Below, piece after piece: positions 43,097 through 52,627 of a DNA stretch of 64,000 nt. Under the pieces are notes generated by a model. That model had not been told where the DNA came from. It searched no databases and saw nothing but the letters and a program-made list of their open reading frames with translations. The position numbers were made by a program, and so were the translations under genes. Within the stretch, counting starts at the first letter, position 1; the number at the start of each line of letters is the position of its first letter. The stretch comes from Paragordius varius (Eukaryota > Animalia > Nematomorpha), in assembly GCA_964247055.1 (NCBI GenBank), contig OZ176054.1, positions 5,642,001-5,706,000 on the forward strand. The letters are read 5' to 3'.

Positions 43097-45428
43097 ATGG
43101 TAAATCAAAAACTACGAGTTATAAAATTGCCAACAGAGGATTTATCTTATACCAATTGTGCTGCTGTTAACATTAAACAATTTCCCAATGACATAAATCA
43201 TGTAATTATTGAGTCACATTTTATATTATCATTAAAAAAAATCACTGAAATTCCACTCGGCGACATCGGTTTTTCTTTACCTCTACGAAAATGGGCAGGG
43301 TTATTTATCGAAGGATTAATTGACGTAAAGCCATATAATTTTGATAAAAATACTCAACAAATTCATAAGATTACATTTGAAGTGGATTTTTGGGGCAAAA
43401 AAACCAATATTCAAGAAGTATACGATACCGTTGATATGGCTGATGCTGTTGATAAGCAGTTTAGAAATATATCATTCAGTGTTGGACAACAGATACCTTT
43501 CAATTATATGAATAAAAAATTGCTATCTTTTATTGTTAAAGAGATTGAATGCATTGATGTTCCAGAATCCCAAGCATTTATTAAATCAAAAAAGAGTAAT
43601 TTTGGGATTTTAGTATCAAAATCATTCATATTCTTTGATAAAGCCGAATCCTCAACTATACTTTTAGGTGGAAAATGTAAAGGTAAAGTTGAATACCAAT
43701 CAATTATTAATCCCGATTGGGATTTTCAGAAAATGGGAATTGGTGGGTTAGACACCGAATTTTCGGCAATATTTCGCCGAGCATTTGCATCAAGAGTATT
43801 TCCTCCTGAAATAGTTGAGCAACTAGGTCTTAAACATGTCAAGGGCATTTTGTTGTTTGGACCTCCTGGGACAGGAAAAACTTTAATGGCAAGGCAGATA
43901 GGAAAAATGCTAAATTCACGTGAACCGATAATAGTTAACGGACCACAAATATTGGATAAGTATGTGGGAGAATCTGAAGCCAATATTCGCAAATTGTTTG
44001 CACCTGCCGAAGAGGAAGAAAAGAGATTAGGACCTATGAGTGGCTTGCATATAATTATCTTTGATGAAATAGATGCGATCTGTAAATCTCGAGGTTCAGT
44101 GGCCGGAAGTACCGGCGTACAAGATACTGTTGTGAATCAACTGTTAGCTAAAATAGATGGAGTTGATCAATTAAATAACATTCTAGTCATTGGGATGACC
44201 AATCGCAAGGATATGATAGATGAGGCTCTTCTTAGACCAGGACGGTTTGAGGTACAAATGGAAATAGGTTTACCTAACGAAGAAGGCCGATTACAAATCC
44301 TAAAAATTCATACAGCAAAAATGCGAGAAAACAAGAAAATGGATCCTAATGTTGATTTATTAAAATTAGCAGCATTAACACGCAATTTTAGTGGGGCAGA
44401 AATTGAGGGTTTAGTTAGAGCCGCACAGTCATCCGCTCTCAATAGATTAATTAAGGCTACCAACAAAGTTGAAGTTGACGCTGATGCATTCGATAAAATT
44501 ATGATAACTATGGATGATTTTGTGAACGCTTTGGAGAATGATATAAAACCAGGTTTTGGTGCAAGTTTTGAACAAATCGAAAATTACATATCATATGGCA
44601 TAATTACATGGGGTAAGATTGTTCAAGAAATATTGGAAGATGGTAATTTATTTATTCAACAAGTATGGAATAGTGAACACAAGTGTGCAATAAGTGTTTT
44701 GTTGGACGGAACACCGGGAAGTGGTAAAACAGCATTGGCAGCAAAAATTGCCCTAACCTCGAATTTTCCATTTGTTAAGCTTATAACACCGGAAGATATG
44801 ATCGCTTTTACCGAACCGGCTAAATGTCAATATATTAAAAAAATATTTGATGATGCTTACAAATCTGAGTTGAGTTGCATAATAATTGATGACATTGAAC
44901 GACTACTCGAATATAGTCCCGTTGGACCGCGTTATTCAAATTTAGTCTTGCAAACTCTTTTAGTTCTTCTCAAAAAAGAACCCGCTGTGTCAAACACCAA
45001 AGCTATTAAAAAAATGTTAATCCTGGGTACAACAAGTGAGCCCGCTTTTGCTAAAGAATTGGGTATATTGTTTAAATTTAATTTACATTTTTAATGATTT
45101 GATATTTATTCTATTCATATTGCAAATTAATTTAGGCATCTTATCGGCTTTCACTTCAACCATCCGCGTTTTCAATCTTTCTAATGGACAACACGTTCTC
45201 AATGTGCTTGAAACGTTAGATTTTTTTGGACCAGAAGAGCTTGAGTCAATCTCGCAGAAAATAAAGCATGCCAAATGCTTTGTTGGCATCAAAAAATTAA
45301 TTGCAATAGCTGATCTCTCACGACAAACTGAACCAAAGTATAGGGTATCAAAATTTTTGATTAAAATGGAAGAAGAGGGTGGATTAGAAATCAAACCTGA
45401 CCTCTATGAAGCGGATGAAGGCATGTAA
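43097..45428 (+). CDS. NSF: N-ethylmaleimide-sensitive factor (vesicle-fusing AAA ATPase), 752 aa
   Basis: join(43097-45062,45136-45428), one 73-nt intron. [35 protein letters not shown], Walker A GPPGTGKT and [16 protein letters not shown]. Confidence 0.98.
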
Positions 45429-45753: not shown

Positions 45754-48700
45754 TTATCTATTATTTTTGAAATATGCCTTTAATGTTTTGATGTAACTTG
45801 ATTTGTTTCCGGATGACTTTTGAATATTGAGTGTTGTACAAAATTTTTTGAGCATTGGTAAAGTACAAGTATCAAACTAATAAAAATAATTAAAATTCCG
45901 AATCATAACTAATCCGCGCATATTCAATAATTAAATCTTGTAAAAAAACAAAGATACCATCGGCACCTTTAATATGATAAAACTGATATAAATTAATTTA
46001 TTAAAAAATAAAGTAAATAGTAATTTACCGTATCATTTTTATAGTATGTCATAATCTCGTTTATATGGTAGTTAGGCAACTTGATTTTCTGTAAATATGG
46101 TAAAACAAATTATTTTAAATTTAATATGTTAAAAAATCAATTGTATCCGCAGTTCAAATTGATTACAACAAAATTCACAGTAAAATACTACCTTCGAAGG
46201 AACAAATGTTGTAGACGTGCCAGATATGTTAAGCTTATTCTTTAATAACTTAATCGGTTGATGTAATCTTTCATGCAATACCTTATAGTTGGGGAGTGTT
46301 GAATCATGAAACTCTTCGCCTCCAGTAATGGATGGTCTGTCTAAAGCCAACGCCTCAAGTACACGGTAATGTCTTTGAAGCACTATGCAACATTAATAAA
46401 TTAAATTAAAATTATATACACAAAACATAAAGGTATAAAATAAATTATAAATGTTTGACCTGGATTTTCAAAGTTAGTGATTGCATAAGTAAATTTTGAT
46501 TTTTGTATGATTTGTTTGGCTAAATCGATTGTTTCTGGATCGGCCTTTATATCTATATAAAAAATATTTTGTTATACAAATCAAGAATTATCATTTTATA
46601 GGGAAGCTACCTGCTTCGAGAAACAATTACAAGTATGTTTGTAAGATAACTCATAAAAACTATTAGGTATGAAAAGTTAGATTTAAATTATGTATGAAGT
46701 GCTAAAATTATAAAGAAAAAATATTATGGTTAAAATTAGGTTGAATATGTCCGTTCAATAATAGCTATAGTTTCAAAGCTTATGAATGCAACTACGGTCC
46801 TCAATAATGTTAAATGTGAAATTATCATATTAGAACAAAACGAAATAAAGCAATAAAATGAGTTTTAATAGTATAAATACATATTTGTAACAATTAATAA
46901 AAATTGTTAAAAAGGTTCTCAACTCATTAAATTGATTAGCAATGACAATTACAACATTTTATGCATTCATTACCAGTCTCAGACCAAATCCTTGTTTTAA
47001 TAATAACCGTAATATTTTTTCTTAATTTGACCTAAATCAATATATTAAAAGTATTAACCCAAATTCATTGGATACGATATTTTTCTAAAATCTTCGGCGT
47101 AAGGCAAGTATTTGACATAAAAACCACTCGGTTCTAATTGCACGCCTTCAGAATTGACGATTTCCATCTAAAAACATAAAAAGAATAATCCAAGTTGGTT
47201 AATCCTAAAATATTGTTTGCACAGAAATGCTGCAAAATATATAATTATCGTTCTAGTTATGTTTAAAACTTGATAATTAAGCGTATATAAAACATTTATG
47301 ATAGAGTGAATAAGAATGATCAAAAATATTATTTTTAACTGCAAATTATAATCATATTAATATATATGTATAATTCAGCTAAAATTATATAAATTTATTA
47401 TGATATTTCGATTACTACAAGTAATCTTTGTCAAAGGTAAAAATAAAATTAAAATATAATAAAATTTAAATTATAAAGTAAAAATTTTAGTTTATATTTT
47501 AATTTTATTTTTACGTTTGACAAAGATTACTTGTAGTAATCGAAAGAATTATACATATATAATAATACAATCACACTTCAGGGTAAACAATATAATCACA
47601 TTATTACCATTTTTTTCCAAAAAAGACCTATATAATTAAATTTTATCTTCAATTTCGTTTTCGGAAATACAACATTTAATATTAATTCAAAACTAAAGCC
47701 CTGTTTGAGAAAAAATTATATTTTGATTATAATTAAATTGAACTAGAAAAAACTTGAGGCATTAAAGCTACCAAATAGGGTTGCGAAAAACGGCGTGGTA
47801 CGAATGAGCATATAATAACTTTTTCGCGTTCATGACATCGCGTTAATAAAGCACGAAATAATTTGGTACTTCCGATAATTTTCTGCAATACAGAAGGTAA
47901 TTAACGAAATTGTGCCAAAAAAATGTAATTAAATTTTTTTAATACAAAATGTAATAACCATTTTTATAATAAAAGCAATTATTACTTTTTCTTCGGGAAA
48001 TATGAATTGAGTCGGGCGTACAAACCAGTAAGGCTTGATAAAACTGACTGGTTTAAATCCCATAATCTTGATGTCTAATTACGATAAAATTAACAAATCA
48101 AAAAAATGTATCAAAAAATATTATAAATTCCAGCTTGAATATTTCAAATCGACTTAAAATCTGCGAGCCTTAAAAAATTAAATTCATTTTAATAATATAT
48201 CGGCATAGATAACATATAAGTATAATTTAATATAAAAAGAACTAAGCAGAACAAAAAAAAACTCAACTATGAGTAATTTAGATCAAAACACTTTTTATTT
48301 TTAGGTAAATTTATGTTTTAGGATTGAGAAGATAATTGAAAATCTTTAAAAATCAATTTAACAATATTATATATATACCATCTAATCTAATTCACCCTTT
48401 CACAATTCAAATTCACTCTAAAAATAAATGTGTTTTCGGGCTAATATAACTCATCATTAATATAAAATATATCTTTATGGCATAGTTTATAATTTTTTTA
48501 TTTTTATATTTGTAAACAAATTTATATTTTTAAAATATTAAAAAATACAATAACACAAAATTTATCTTAGGGTGAATTTGAATTGTTCGAGGGCGATTTT
48601 GAATTATTCAAGGGTGAATTTGAACTGTAAATTGTATATATATTAAGCAGTATTTTCCATAATTATTACAAGAACAGATCAAAAGCGTATTGACAAACCT

Positions 48701-50722
48701 CATTGGTATATATTATTTTTTTCGAAATATTAGATAACTAACTATTAATCTACGTATCACATTACATTTAAAAAAAATTGTAAAATATTCTACCAGCCAT
48801 CATAAAATATAATTTAGTTGTAATTTTTTATAATTTAAAATAAACCACTAATTTTTTGGTTTAAAAAAAATTGGGATGTTATTTAAGGAACGATTTTGAC
48901 TTTAAATCCTATGTCACAACTTGTAATTTATGCTTTATCAAACGCAAATTTCACATAAAATAAGGTTAGCTGTAGGTAGACATACAAGGTGAGCCAAAAT
49001 CTTTCAACTTTTTTATTTCTTCGGGTTCAAAAATAATTTTTGCCCCGCCATATTCCATGTATTTGCGTGTAGGCTCAGCCATTTCAATGTCTTCCACATC
49101 CTCCTCAGGTAAATTGAGTTCTTCTCCTTTCTGAGATATAATTTCAAGCGTGTCTTTATCCAACTTAATGGGTGTAGGCATTTTGGAAGAGGACACGAGC
49201 GAGTACCTATAAATATTGGTTTATTCAATGGTTTTAAACCAGTAATGACAACATATTTTTACGGCCCATGAATATTTAGCAAATTACCAGGTAAAAATAT
49301 AAAATTCGATAATATGCAAATATATGCCATCTAAAACGTTGGTAAAATTGATATTTTTAAACAAATTTAAACCTGCATAAATTTTAATTTTGGCAACGAA
49401 GTGGCAATTAGAAAAATAAATAATAGTTATTTGTTCGTAAATTTTTTACAGTATTTTTATATCTAATATAATATTTAATGATGCTCATACATATTTATTC
49501 GAATGCAACCCTAGCCATTTGGGCATATATGCTTAAATATAATGTTTGCTTTATTAACATAATTTGTTTTTAAATTGAAATTATATTTGCAACAATATTT
49601 GTGAGGTAGAATAAAAAAATAAGTACTTAATCAAAAATTAAAGATTATAGGCTATGTCATGATACAAGGTTAAACTGACAAATTATATTAAATATTTATG
49701 ATACTGCAAACCAAACATAATAGAATCATATTATACGAAAAGACGAATATTGCATGATACCAAACTGCATATCAAAATGTAAACAGTAACATAATATTTT
49801 ACAGGGATATTCCGATAGCTAAATTTGGACCAATTATTAGAGGGAGTTTTGATATGGCTTTCTTATGATAATCGTAAATCCGGAGTCTGGAAGTCAGTTC
49901 ACGCAATATATCTTTATAATTTGGATATCCGTTAACTTCCTCATCGCTTAACCCTAAAACGTCCTAATATTATTTTGTTTGTCATTATGATACTTGATAA
50001 AAAAGTTTGAGATCAAATATTTTGTTGGAATACCCAACTATTTCAATATCAATGTTTTGCTCATACAAATCTTTTACCCTTTGCATTAGGAGTTTCTAAT
50101 TAAACATTTTCATGTTATATTTACCTTAGATTTGATATTATCCACCGGATTAGGATAAGCTGTAAAAAGAAAAACCTTTTTGGAACCAATTTTATACTTG
50201 CTAAAATAAATTTTATAAAAAAAAACTTGGAGATAAACATATTGGAACATAACCAAAAACACTCAGCCAAAGTACAATTTTCTTGCCCCCTTTCAAAAGA
50301 TGTATGATCTATGTGTTATATTTGGACGCCAACTTAATATAAGATATTCCAGTTTTTTGATAACATCCGCACCAATACTTTGGAAATCTTGATATACATA
50401 AATATGTTTAAATTCATTCATATTTTTTGTAATTTTCTACGTTATAAATATTTAATTACTGTATTAAAAAGTATAACTGCGTTTTGATTTTTATCATTTG
50501 CTATAATATCCCGTAACATCCAATCTCTGATTGTCTTAAATTATTATTAATTTTAACTTTGATGGTTAAAGAAAACCAATTTTCATCAAACATTTCATTT
50601 TCGCAATCAATTAAAAATATAGTGCCGTCTCTAAAATTAGCCTCCTCCTAGAAATTAAATTAATCCCATACATTATAATTTTCGTCGATTTCTTCATCAT
50701 TCCAAATATTTTCCCAATTCAT
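45754..50722 (-). CDS. XRCC6: Ku70 (vWA, beta-barrel, SAP domains), 16 exons
   Basis: Exons 50672-50722, 50558-50647, 50460-50534, 50334-50436, 50227-50308, 50125-50200, 49994-50095, 49803-49963, 48986-49206, 47986-48074, 47754-47882, 47059-47167, 46460-46552, 46192-46382, 46029-46088 and 45754-45876. Motifs [59 protein letters not shown], and [12 protein letters not shown]. Confidence 0.95.
47406..47545. repeat. 140-bp near-perfect hairpin in Ku70 intron 11
   Basis: Arms of about 54 bp (TTTCGATTACTACAAGTAATCTTTGTCAAA...) with 1 mismatch and a loop of about 32 nt. Confidence 0.9.
48376..48636. mobile_element. Second foldback MITE copy (fewer 21-bp units) in Ku70 intron 9
   Basis: Same termini and unit as 33736-34130, with about 2 left and 3 right units. 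Confidence 0.8.
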
Positions 50723-50753
50723 CGTGGTTAGATATCACATATGTTTAGCTTCT

Positions 50754-52627
50754 ATGCGTAAGGAAAAAGTTGTGCTTGCGTATTCGGGTGGTTTGGATAC
50801 CTCATGCATTCTTGTTTGGCTTATTGAAAACAATTATGATGTCATTGCATTTTTAGTTTTTGATATATTATTTTATTATTTAGGCAAATATTGGACAAGA
50901 AGAAGATTTTGATGAAGCCAGAGCCAAAGCTATGAAATTGGGTGCAATTAAAGTTATTTTGGTTATAATTGTGTTATAGGTAATTATTTCAGATTTGCGT
51001 AATACCTTCTTACAAGATTATATACTCCCATTGCTTCAATCTGGTGCTATGTATGAGCGGCGATATTTTATGGGTACAGCGATTGCAAGACCATGCATTG
51101 CTCATGAAATGATCAAAATAGCCAAAGAGGAAGGCGCAACTGCTGTTTCGCACGGAGCTACAGGGAAAGGCAATGATCAAGTAAGATTCGAGCTCGCTTT
51201 TTACGCTCTTCTCCCAAATGTTAACATAGTGGCCCCATGGAAAATACCAGCTTTCTATGAACGTTTTTGTGGTCGACCCGAATTATTTGAGTATGCTAAG
51301 CTAAAGGGAGTGCCCTTACCCCAATCACTTACACCGAAAACACCATGGAGTGTTGATTCTAATTTAATGCACAACTCTTATGAATCGGGTTTGTTGGAGG
51401 ACCCTTATAATACGGCACCCAAAAACTTATACCAATTAACACATGATCCATTTGTTGATATAGCAGGAGATGATAGCAATAATAATGGCAATAATGCTGA
51501 ATTAAAAGTATTAGGGACACCAAACATACCCGATGAAATTGAAATCTATTTTAAAGCCGGAGTACCCAATAGGCTTATTATCCACTCTTGTACGGATGAT
51601 GTAACGTGTCCCCCCAAAAAAGTTGCCAAAGTATCATCACAAATAAAAGAAAAAATCATCGAAAATGATTTGTTATCTCTTTACTGTAAATTGAACGAAT
51701 TGGCTTCACTCCATGGTATCGGTAGGATAGATATTGTTGAAAATCGGTTTATTGGCATGAAATCGAGAGGCATTTACGAAACACCAGGTTATCAAATTTT
51801 GTATGAAGCTTATCGTGATTTAGAAATGTTGGTTCTAGATCGGGAAGTCCTTAAAATTAAACGGTATAATGTGCATTCAATTAATGTTTTTTATATTTTT
51901 TATTGCTAATATTACACTATTTGTACAAATATTTTTGGAATCCTTGCCACAATTTTTTTTCCATATTAAAAAAACTTGCAATTTGAAAAAAATATATATT
52001 TTTGCCGACGGCTTTTTACATTGTCACAGTTATCGTTGCTTAATGTTCAATTATACCATTTTATAATATTGTTTAATAAGTATTTGGGTAACAGCGTGCA
52101 AACTTCGTCTAAAAGGCGTTACCCTTAAATTATATTGATTTTATATGACATTTTGTTATTAGATACTTATCCGATGTTTTTGCTGATCAAATTTACAATG
52201 GTTTTTGGTTTTCCCCTGAATGTGAATATACGCGAGCTTGCCTTCGTTTAGCAGATAAAAATCTAATTAGTGGGAGCGTTAAACTTCGTTTATTTAAAGG
52301 ACACATATACATACAAGCACGTCAACCGGAAAGATCTTTATCACTTTATGACAAAGACTTAGTTAGTATGGATATCAAGGGAGATTACAATCCTATAGAT
52401 GCTCAGGGATTCATTAAAATTAATGCTCTCAGGTTTATAATCAGATCTAAATTTTCGATAAGTTTTTAACATATAAATATTTAATTAAAACTTTTTGTGC
52501 TTTTAACAATTATGATCTATTTTGTTTGAAAATAAAATTGAGTCATATAATTTTATTGCATTATACTTGCTGTCTTAGATTGAAAGCCCATCAATTAAGG
52601 AAAGAACGATTGAATATTGAAATTTGA
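50754..52627 (+). CDS. ASS1: Argininosuccinate synthase, 5 exons
   Basis: join(50754-50855,50884-50952,50980-51863,52163-52432,52579-52627). [61 protein letters not shown]. Confidence 0.97.

Follow-up and report, generated by a model that had tools for sequence, protein, structure and literature searches.

Can an animal splice introns shorter than 30 nucleotides (nt)? Animal introns below about 30 nt have long been regarded as impossible or as annotation errors (PMC13644364). The question is raised by a Ku70 (XRCC6) gene of Paragordius varius (Nematomorpha), whose 5' part is interrupted by seven segments of 23-30 nt. The gene lies in a stretch of 64,000 nt (contig OZ176054.1, positions 5,642,001 to 5,706,000 of the forward strand, assembly GCA_964247055.1). 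This whole stretch is called the window below, and all coordinates are counted from its first letter. As judged from the sequence, the seven segments are very probably genuine spliced introns of the U2-type GT-AG class, about 23-30 nt in length, in the Ku70 gene of a nematomorph that is distinct from Gordionus but related to it.

Seven probable tiny introns in the 5' part of Ku70

On the minus strand, from 50671 down to 49964, there are seven GT..AG segments of 24, 23, 23, 25, 26, 29 and 30 nt, which add up to 180 nt. An earlier note on this DNA had proposed seven GT-AG introns here, and all seven are present at exactly the coordinates and with the lengths that it gave. They are as follows:

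50648-50671, minus strand: micro-intron 1, 24 nt, phase 0, GTATGG..TTCTAG, in-frame TAA if retained
50535-50557, minus strand: micro-intron 2, 23 nt, phase 0, GTTAAA..TTTAAG
50437-50459, minus strand: micro-intron 3, 23 nt, phase 0, GTAATT..ACGTAG
50309-50333, minus strand: micro-intron 4, 25 nt, phase 1, GTTGGC..ACATAG
50201-50226, minus strand: micro-intron 5, 26 nt, phase 2, GTTTTT..TTTTAG
50096-50124, minus strand: micro-intron 6, 29 nt, phase 0, GTAAAT..AATTAG
49964-49993, minus strand: micro-intron 7, 30 nt, phase 0, GTATCA..TATTAG, in-frame TAA if retained

They separate eight exons that probably encode the N-terminal vWA-like (Ku_N) domain:

50672-50722, minus strand: Ku70 exon 1, 51 nt
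50558-50647, minus strand: Ku70 exon 2, 90 nt
50460-50534, minus strand: Ku70 exon 3, 75 nt
50334-50436, minus strand: Ku70 exon 4, 103 nt
50227-50308, minus strand: Ku70 exon 5, 82 nt
50125-50200, minus strand: Ku70 exon 6, 76 nt
49994-50095, minus strand: Ku70 exon 7, 102 nt
49803-49963, minus strand: Ku70 exon 8, 161 nt

The A+T content of exons 1-8 is 70%, and that of the micro-introns ranges from 60 to 92%. When the micro-introns are removed, the sequence from the ATG at 50722 to the next donor at 49802 is read as 246 codons with zero stops. Without splicing, every frame of this 5' part is broken: the segments of 23, 23, 25, 26 and 29 nt shift the frame, and those of 24 and 30 nt bring in an in-frame TAA. 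Altogether, 524 spliced codons of Ku70 contain no stop, in sequence of about 70% A+T.

The spliced N-terminus is collinear with 12 Ku70 proteins, and a gap opens at none of the seven junctions. The claim that exon lengths and phases are consistent and that the product resembles Ku70 is thus borne out, both by this collinearity and by the stop-free spliced frame.

The Ku70 gene and its closest relatives

The complete gene has about 16 exons. Between 50722 and 46192 its model is firm; the C-terminal linker and the SAP region are modeled tentatively. Besides the micro-introns, it contains six firm introns of ordinary size:

45757-50722, minus strand: Ku70 (XRCC6) homologue, ~16 exons, ATG at 50722, stop near 45757
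49207-49802, minus strand: Ku70 intron, 596 nt
48075-48985, minus strand: Ku70 intron, 911 nt
47883-47985, minus strand: Ku70 intron, 103 nt
47168-47753, minus strand: Ku70 intron, 586 nt
46553-47058, minus strand: Ku70 intron, 506 nt
46383-46459, minus strand: Ku70 intron, 77 nt

Two further introns, of about 100 and 152 nt, are placed in the less certain C-terminal part. These lengths agree with the range of 77-911 nt that had been given for the remaining introns of the gene.

The closest Ku70 in protein collections is that of the horsehair worm Gordionus sp. m RMFG-2023 (hereafter Gordionus). In the spliced alignment to residues 6-629 of this protein, identity is 52% over 587 aligned residues. 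A single downstream exon, used as the query in a profile-free search, matched Ku70 proteins of many animals. Named homologues include the Schmidtea "putative Ku70" and Nymphon XRCC6. PF02735 (Ku) matches four consecutive exon pieces (profile positions 12-76, 82-110, 114-154, and 152-175), and PF03730 (Ku_C) matches one exon piece (E 5e-9). The exon-11 piece has nine PDB matches, every one of them XRCC6 and not XRCC5. The last exon, of 40 residues, resembles the SAP end of another Ku70 (residues 629-659 of 661) in a single comparison, where the match is weak (E 0.005).

Pfam gave no match for the single N-terminal exons or for the 40-residue last (putative SAP) exon, pieces that are too short. 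The spliced N-terminus aligns along the Ku_N region of the 12 homologues, whose precomputed Pfam domains include PF03731. The start codon and an N-terminal M..W motif are conserved in the 12-protein alignment. The sequence matches support the assignment of the gene as a Ku70 (XRCC6) homologue, nearer to Ku70 than to Ku80.

Several database records of related proteins need a remark. NCBI names the Gordionus protein "XRCC5-like", although its relatives are Ku70/XRCC6. The RefSeq version of Gordionus Ku70, XP_065317084, starts with MFQT and is without the first 42 residues, which correspond to exon 1 and most of exon 2. The original Gordionus annotation, CAK9298324, includes these 42 N-terminal residues. 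The short 5' exons between introns of 41-43 nt seem to trouble annotation in Gordionus, too. The best match of the exon-11 query was an Acipenser sinensis record (UNVERIFIED_CONTAM, 997 amino acids), which was matched in 10 separate stretches. In this Acipenser model, one Ku70 exon-like piece seems to be repeated in tandem about ten times.

Intron positions shared with other ecdysozoans

The positions of the segments provide the strongest argument that they are introns. At the Ku70 locus of Gordionus, 18 introns were recovered with 100% protein identity. Micro-introns 2, 3, 5, 6 and 7 correspond exactly to Gordionus introns of 41 nt (after residue 60, phase 0), 42 nt (after residue 85, phase 0), 949 nt (after residue 156, phase 2), 4391 nt (after residue 183, phase 0), and 421 nt (after residue 226, phase 0), respectively. 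Micro-intron 1 maps to Gordionus residue 23, and Gordionus has a 43-nt intron after residue 21, also in phase 0; here the alignment passes through a gapped acidic stretch. Micro-intron 4 lies close to a Gordionus intron of 892 nt after residue 119, in phase 1. In total, all seven share the phase of their Gordionus counterpart. Five are exact in residue, and introns 1 and 4 lie no more than 2-3 residues away, in stretches where the alignment has gaps. Gordionus also has introns at the positions of the six firm long Ku70 introns (596, 911, 103, 586, 506, and 77 nt), and three further Gordionus Ku70 introns have no counterpart in the gene of the window.

An alignment of six proteins allowed comparison with the sea spider Nymphon striatum. 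In it, five of the micro-introns have a Nymphon intron in the same column and phase. At these sites, the Nymphon introns are 83 nt (intron 1), 1469 nt (intron 2), 114 nt (intron 3), 1827 nt (intron 5), and 908 nt (intron 7) long. At the site of intron 4, Nymphon has a phase-1 intron of 1965 nt, which stands outside the five matches in column and phase. Intron 6 has no Nymphon counterpart in this alignment.

As two other species have introns at the codons and in the phases of these segments, chance pairs of GT and AG are not a viable explanation. The shared positions indicate that the micro-introns are old ecdysozoan introns which are very short here, and not new insertions.

Spliced alignment and alternative junctions

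The junctions were also examined with a purpose-written protein-to-genome aligner. It accepts any GT..AG intron of at least 15 nt at a flat cost, with no length prior, and it was run with nine Ku70 proteins and two gap costs each (18 runs). Introns 5, 6 and 7 were each picked in 16 of the 18 runs, intron 3 in 10, and intron 2 in 9. For intron 4, the 25-nt form was picked in six runs and a 19-nt form with the donor at 50327 in five. For intron 1, the 24-nt form appeared in four runs, and forms of 27 or 30 nt in five. When Gordionus Ku70 was the query and introns had to be at least 20 nt long, the aligner recovered all seven junction pairs exactly. If frameshifts were allowed, introns 2 and 4 were replaced by frameshifts, and both came back when frameshifts were forbidden. 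This substitution occurred because the linear gap cost penalized 6-9 extra Gordionus residues.

Some of these results count against the introns as listed above. For two junctions there are alternatives. In intron 4, another donor in phase gives a segment of 19 nt at 50309-50327, and intron 1 ends in tandem in-phase acceptors, TAG|GAG|GAG, with which it could be 27 or 30 nt long. In addition, when distant argininosuccinate synthase (ASS) proteins were aligned to the neighboring ASS gene, the aligner invented "introns" of 17-103 nt in a continuous open exon (51454-51649, plus strand). The invented introns skip a lineage-specific insert. In this genome, gene models built on homology alone can thus contain spurious short introns, and the choice of the aligner is therefore no proof by itself; it is the frame breaks and the orthology of positions that carry the argument.

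It is possible, though rather unlikely, that the introns are real and that one or more junctions differ by 3-6 nt from those listed. With the donor at 50327, intron 4 would be 19 nt long, and the protein would gain Ser-Trp and have His in place of Asn. With the second or third AG, intron 1 would be 27 or 30 nt long, and one or two Glu would be dropped. Both alternatives keep the frame, and the aligner picked the 19-nt form and the 27- or 30-nt forms in five runs each. Against them, the ungapped alignment of KKLEYLIL|N with Gordionus KKIEKFMK|D sets the 25-nt form exactly at the phase-1 intron of Gordionus, so that 25 nt is favored over 19 nt. A length of 19 nt would also be below that of the other eight tiny introns in the window (23-30 nt). 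For intron 1, it matters that the usual acceptor is the first AG after the branch site. The junctions in the list above are thus preferred.

The segments in sequencing runs of other samples

The sequencing runs that hold the locus are genomic DNA, and their depth is even over the long introns. Contig totals are 152-278 Mb in four runs that bear the species label of the window (244-278 Mb in the two larger ones) and 519 Mb in run X5, which bears another species label. Contigs of other samples run through the segments: 50040-50613 in X3, 49990-50641 in X4, and 50328-50762 and 49724-50100 in X5. Over the segments, the contigs from these three samples show no more than a few substitutions relative to the window.

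An assembly or sequencing artefact, in which the segments are spurious short insertions, would have nothing but their odd sizes in its favor. The independently assembled contigs of three other samples carry the same segments, and an artefact is exceedingly improbable.

Removal at the DNA level, in the manner of the internal eliminated sequences of ciliates, is another way in which short segments could vanish from a gene. The eliminated sequences of Paramecium are of similar size. The segments in Ku70, however, end in GT..AG and not in TA..TA, and their positions are those of ordinary introns in related animals. They are present in all DNA contigs examined, and no joints that skip them are listed. 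Such removal has next to no probability here.

The same runs and searches also yielded observations that speak against splicing or fail to favor it. No joints that skip the micro-introns are listed for the DNA runs, a result that is informative on DNA and not on RNA. The sampled words of the locus were all absent from the RNA-labelled runs of the species. A search with Gordionus Ku70 returned no transcript-derived or annotated protein of the species, and the nearest protein was the Gordionus one. Likewise, no N-terminal fragment of the species was found when an alignment of the Gordionus N-terminus and the eight exon translations of the window served as the query. Among the variants listed, polymorphisms between samples are about 5 synonymous and about 7 non-synonymous, which is a weak signal of constraint. 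Besides, the X4 contig (49990-50641) represents a divergent haplotype with 11 substitutions and one 1-nt gap of unplaced position. This gap could be a length polymorphism of a tiny intron or an indel in an exon.

These observations bear most directly on the idea that Ku70 is a decaying pseudogene here, and that the segments are insertions or other frame-breaking debris resembling introns. The RNA-labelled runs supplied no evidence of splicing, and the listed polymorphisms show no strong synonymous excess, as would fit decay. Yet all seven interruptions are GT-AG at ancestral positions and phases, and the spliced frame has zero stops in 524 codons at about 70% A+T. The gene has kept its start codon and the M..W motif at the N-terminus, and the neighboring ASS gene shows an equal pattern. 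A pseudogene is therefore very unlikely, and splicing of the seven segments from a Ku70 transcript remains the preferred explanation.

Probable tiny introns in the neighboring ASS gene

The ASS gene is the divergent neighbor of Ku70:

50754, plus strand: ATG of the ASS gene
50856-50883, plus strand: ASS tiny intron 1, 28 nt, GT..AG; Gordionus counterpart 39 nt
50953-50979, plus strand: ASS tiny intron 2, 27 nt, GT..AG, with an in-frame stop; Gordionus counterpart 15,790 nt
51864-52162, plus strand: ASS intron 3, 299 nt; Gordionus counterpart 2333 nt
52433-52578, plus strand: ASS intron 4, 146 nt; Gordionus counterpart 233 nt

Each of the four ASS introns has a Gordionus counterpart at the same residue and in the same phase. 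The best match of the ASS protein among 5.8 billion clusters is a Gordionus protein, with 59% identity. With the seven in Ku70 and the two in ASS, the window contains nine tiny introns of 23-30 nt in two genes, all with GT..AG ends. In both genes they are the 5'-most introns. The three with lengths divisible by three (24 and 30 nt in Ku70, 27 nt in ASS) all contain an in-frame stop.

The start codons of Ku70 (50722) and ASS (50754) diverge with 31 bp between them, and both starts are supported by the N-terminal alignment of homologues. With a gap of 31 bp, the two promoters or 5' untranslated regions must extend into the other gene or be located elsewhere. Gordionus has Ku70 on one chromosome record (OX940785) and ASS on another (OX940783).

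Another gene in the window, on the other side of Ku70, encodes NSF:

43097-45428, plus strand: NSF (vesicle-fusing ATPase) gene, one open frame of 665 codons
45063-45135, plus strand: single GT-AG intron of NSF, 73 nt, near the 3' end

No tiny introns were seen in the NSF gene (43097-45428).

Repeats and composition of the locus

The long introns of Ku70 contain two foldback repeats similar to miniature inverted-repeat transposable elements (MITEs):

47328-47709, strand not assigned: MITE-like foldback repeat in the 586-nt Ku70 intron, arms of 54 nt (47406-47459 and 47492-47545), 98% complementary
48283-48664, strand not assigned: second high-copy MITE-like foldback repeat, in the 911-nt Ku70 intron, inverted arms 48386-48436 and 48552-48602

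Word depth over the first repeat is about 1-2.5 x 10^5, compared with about 7 x 10^2 in its flanks (DNA runs X1 and X3). Over the second, it is about 6-7 x 10^5 (run X1). Both repeats thus reach hundreds to about a thousand times the word depth of the flanking sequence. The setting rich in transposable elements, with introns on the kb scale, had been pointed out in the earlier note, and these high-copy foldbacks in the long introns of Ku70 agree with it.

G+C content is 23-37% in the window and 27.8% at the Ku70 locus of Gordionus. The Gordionus genome as a whole has 26.9% G+C and 63.8% repeats (Gordionus genome paper). A homology-free scan of the window for GT..AG segments of 15-80 nt joining open stretches of at least 17 codons found them no more often than control dinucleotide pairs, and a scan of this kind is powerless at these exon sizes. 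Rfam gave no matches over the whole window, and a tandem-repeat scan of the Ku70 gene revealed nothing of note.

How the introns could have become so short

The ancestral introns have very probably shrunk in this lineage to a minimum of its own near 25 nt, while Gordionus keeps 41-43 nt in the first three Ku70 introns and 0.4-4.4 kb in the other four. After the split from Gordionus, the minimum would have fallen from about 40 to about 25 nt. Ancestral introns of kb size, judged by Gordionus lengths that reach 4.4 kb (Ku70) and 15.8 kb (ASS), would have collapsed preferentially at the 5' end of genes, and the genome would have stayed large and rich in transposons. Introns below 30 nt would then have arisen in animals a third time, independently, and for the first time without a link to genome compaction. 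We consider this course of events somewhat better than an even bet. The window looks like it comes from an unpublished third animal lineage with introns below 30 nt.

Since the exons measure only 51-161 nt, the splice sites of the tiny introns are probably recognized in pairs across each intron (intron definition). Their signals appear minimal. The 5' site would be GTW (GTA or GTT), and the 3' site AG, mostly after T or A. A candidate branch site is an A-rich TAAY-like motif (TAAT or TAAC) a few bases upstream of the AG, although chance alone should often produce such a motif in DNA so rich in A+T. The distance from the 5' splice site to the branch point would then be only about 10-20 nt, and there would be no room for a polypyrimidine tract. 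Retention would lead to a premature stop, so that an unspliced transcript could not yield Ku70 and would be a possible target of nonsense-mediated decay. The same machinery presumably processes the tiny introns and those of 77-911 nt; from this we infer one spliceosome with two size classes, as the earlier note did.

If true, a nematomorph with introns of 23-30 nt beside kb-sized ones that bear MITEs would mean that extreme shortening can occur without a compact genome. Orthologous introns of about 25 nt here and of 39-43 nt or kb size in Gordionus might serve as a system for the rate of intron shrinkage. Comparison with Gordionus could also pinpoint the changes in splice signals or spliceosomal proteins that permit a distance of about 10-20 nt between 5' site and branch point. 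There might be practical consequences as well. The usual gene finders and read aligners, if set to require introns of at least 20-40 nt, would split such genes or cut them short. Truncated gene models could inflate apparent gene loss, and may add to the low BUSCO scores in Nematomorpha.

Comparison with known systems

A 2026 survey of 51 animal genomes found introns below 30 bp solely in myxobolid myxozoans and in Dicyema japonicum (PMC13644364). The myxobolids Henneguya, Thelohanellus and Myxobolus have intron medians of 22-27 bp, and the ultra-short introns of myxobolids and Dicyema show reduced GTa/AG signals with A residues upstream of the AG (PMC13644364). The survey ties introns below 30 bp to parasitism and genome reduction, and foresees more lineages; Nematomorpha are unmentioned (PMC13644364). 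The tiny introns of Ku70 had been described as below the usual metazoan minimum, with dicyemids as the animal cases. The rarity of introns below 30 nt agrees with the survey, and the list of animals lacked the myxobolid myxozoans (PMC13644364). A literature search for hairworms or Nematomorpha together with introns returned nothing relevant, and the word "intron" is absent from the Gordionus genome paper and from a comparative nematomorph preprint.

The introns described here share several features with those of myxobolids and Dicyema. They are GT-AG introns below 30 nt in an animal parasite, at conserved positions between conserved exons. Their motifs are reduced to GTa/AG, A residues upstream provide a candidate branch point, and the short introns are clustered. 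The differences are as clear. The phylum is another one (Nematomorpha, within Ecdysozoa). The tiny class stands beside introns of 77-911 nt in one gene and is concentrated at its 5' end. The genome is rich in repeats, with contig totals of about 244-278 Mb, and is not compacted. Besides, the related genus Gordionus retains introns of 39-43 nt or of kb size at the same sites.

Ciliates are the second system for comparison. The introns of Paramecium and Nyctotherus are about 25 nt long (PMC5014332), and introns of 15-16 nt are given for Stentor in work cited by the survey (PMC13644364). The tiny introns of Ku70 and ASS are in the same size range, and their retention likewise always leads to a premature stop. 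In contrast to those ciliates, in which nearly all introns are tiny, long transposon-bearing introns coexist with them here, and the host is an animal with the standard genetic code.

Ordinary animal genomes have a "minimal intron" peak at about 40-90 nt. In Gordionus, Ku70 introns 1-3 and ASS intron 1, with 39-43 nt, already belong to such a minimal class. The locus resembles this pattern in having a narrow minimal class with a long tail of larger introns, presumably spliced by intron definition. It differs in that the minimum is about 15 nt shorter, at 23-30 nt, under the length of about 30 nt that was long held to be the limit for animals.

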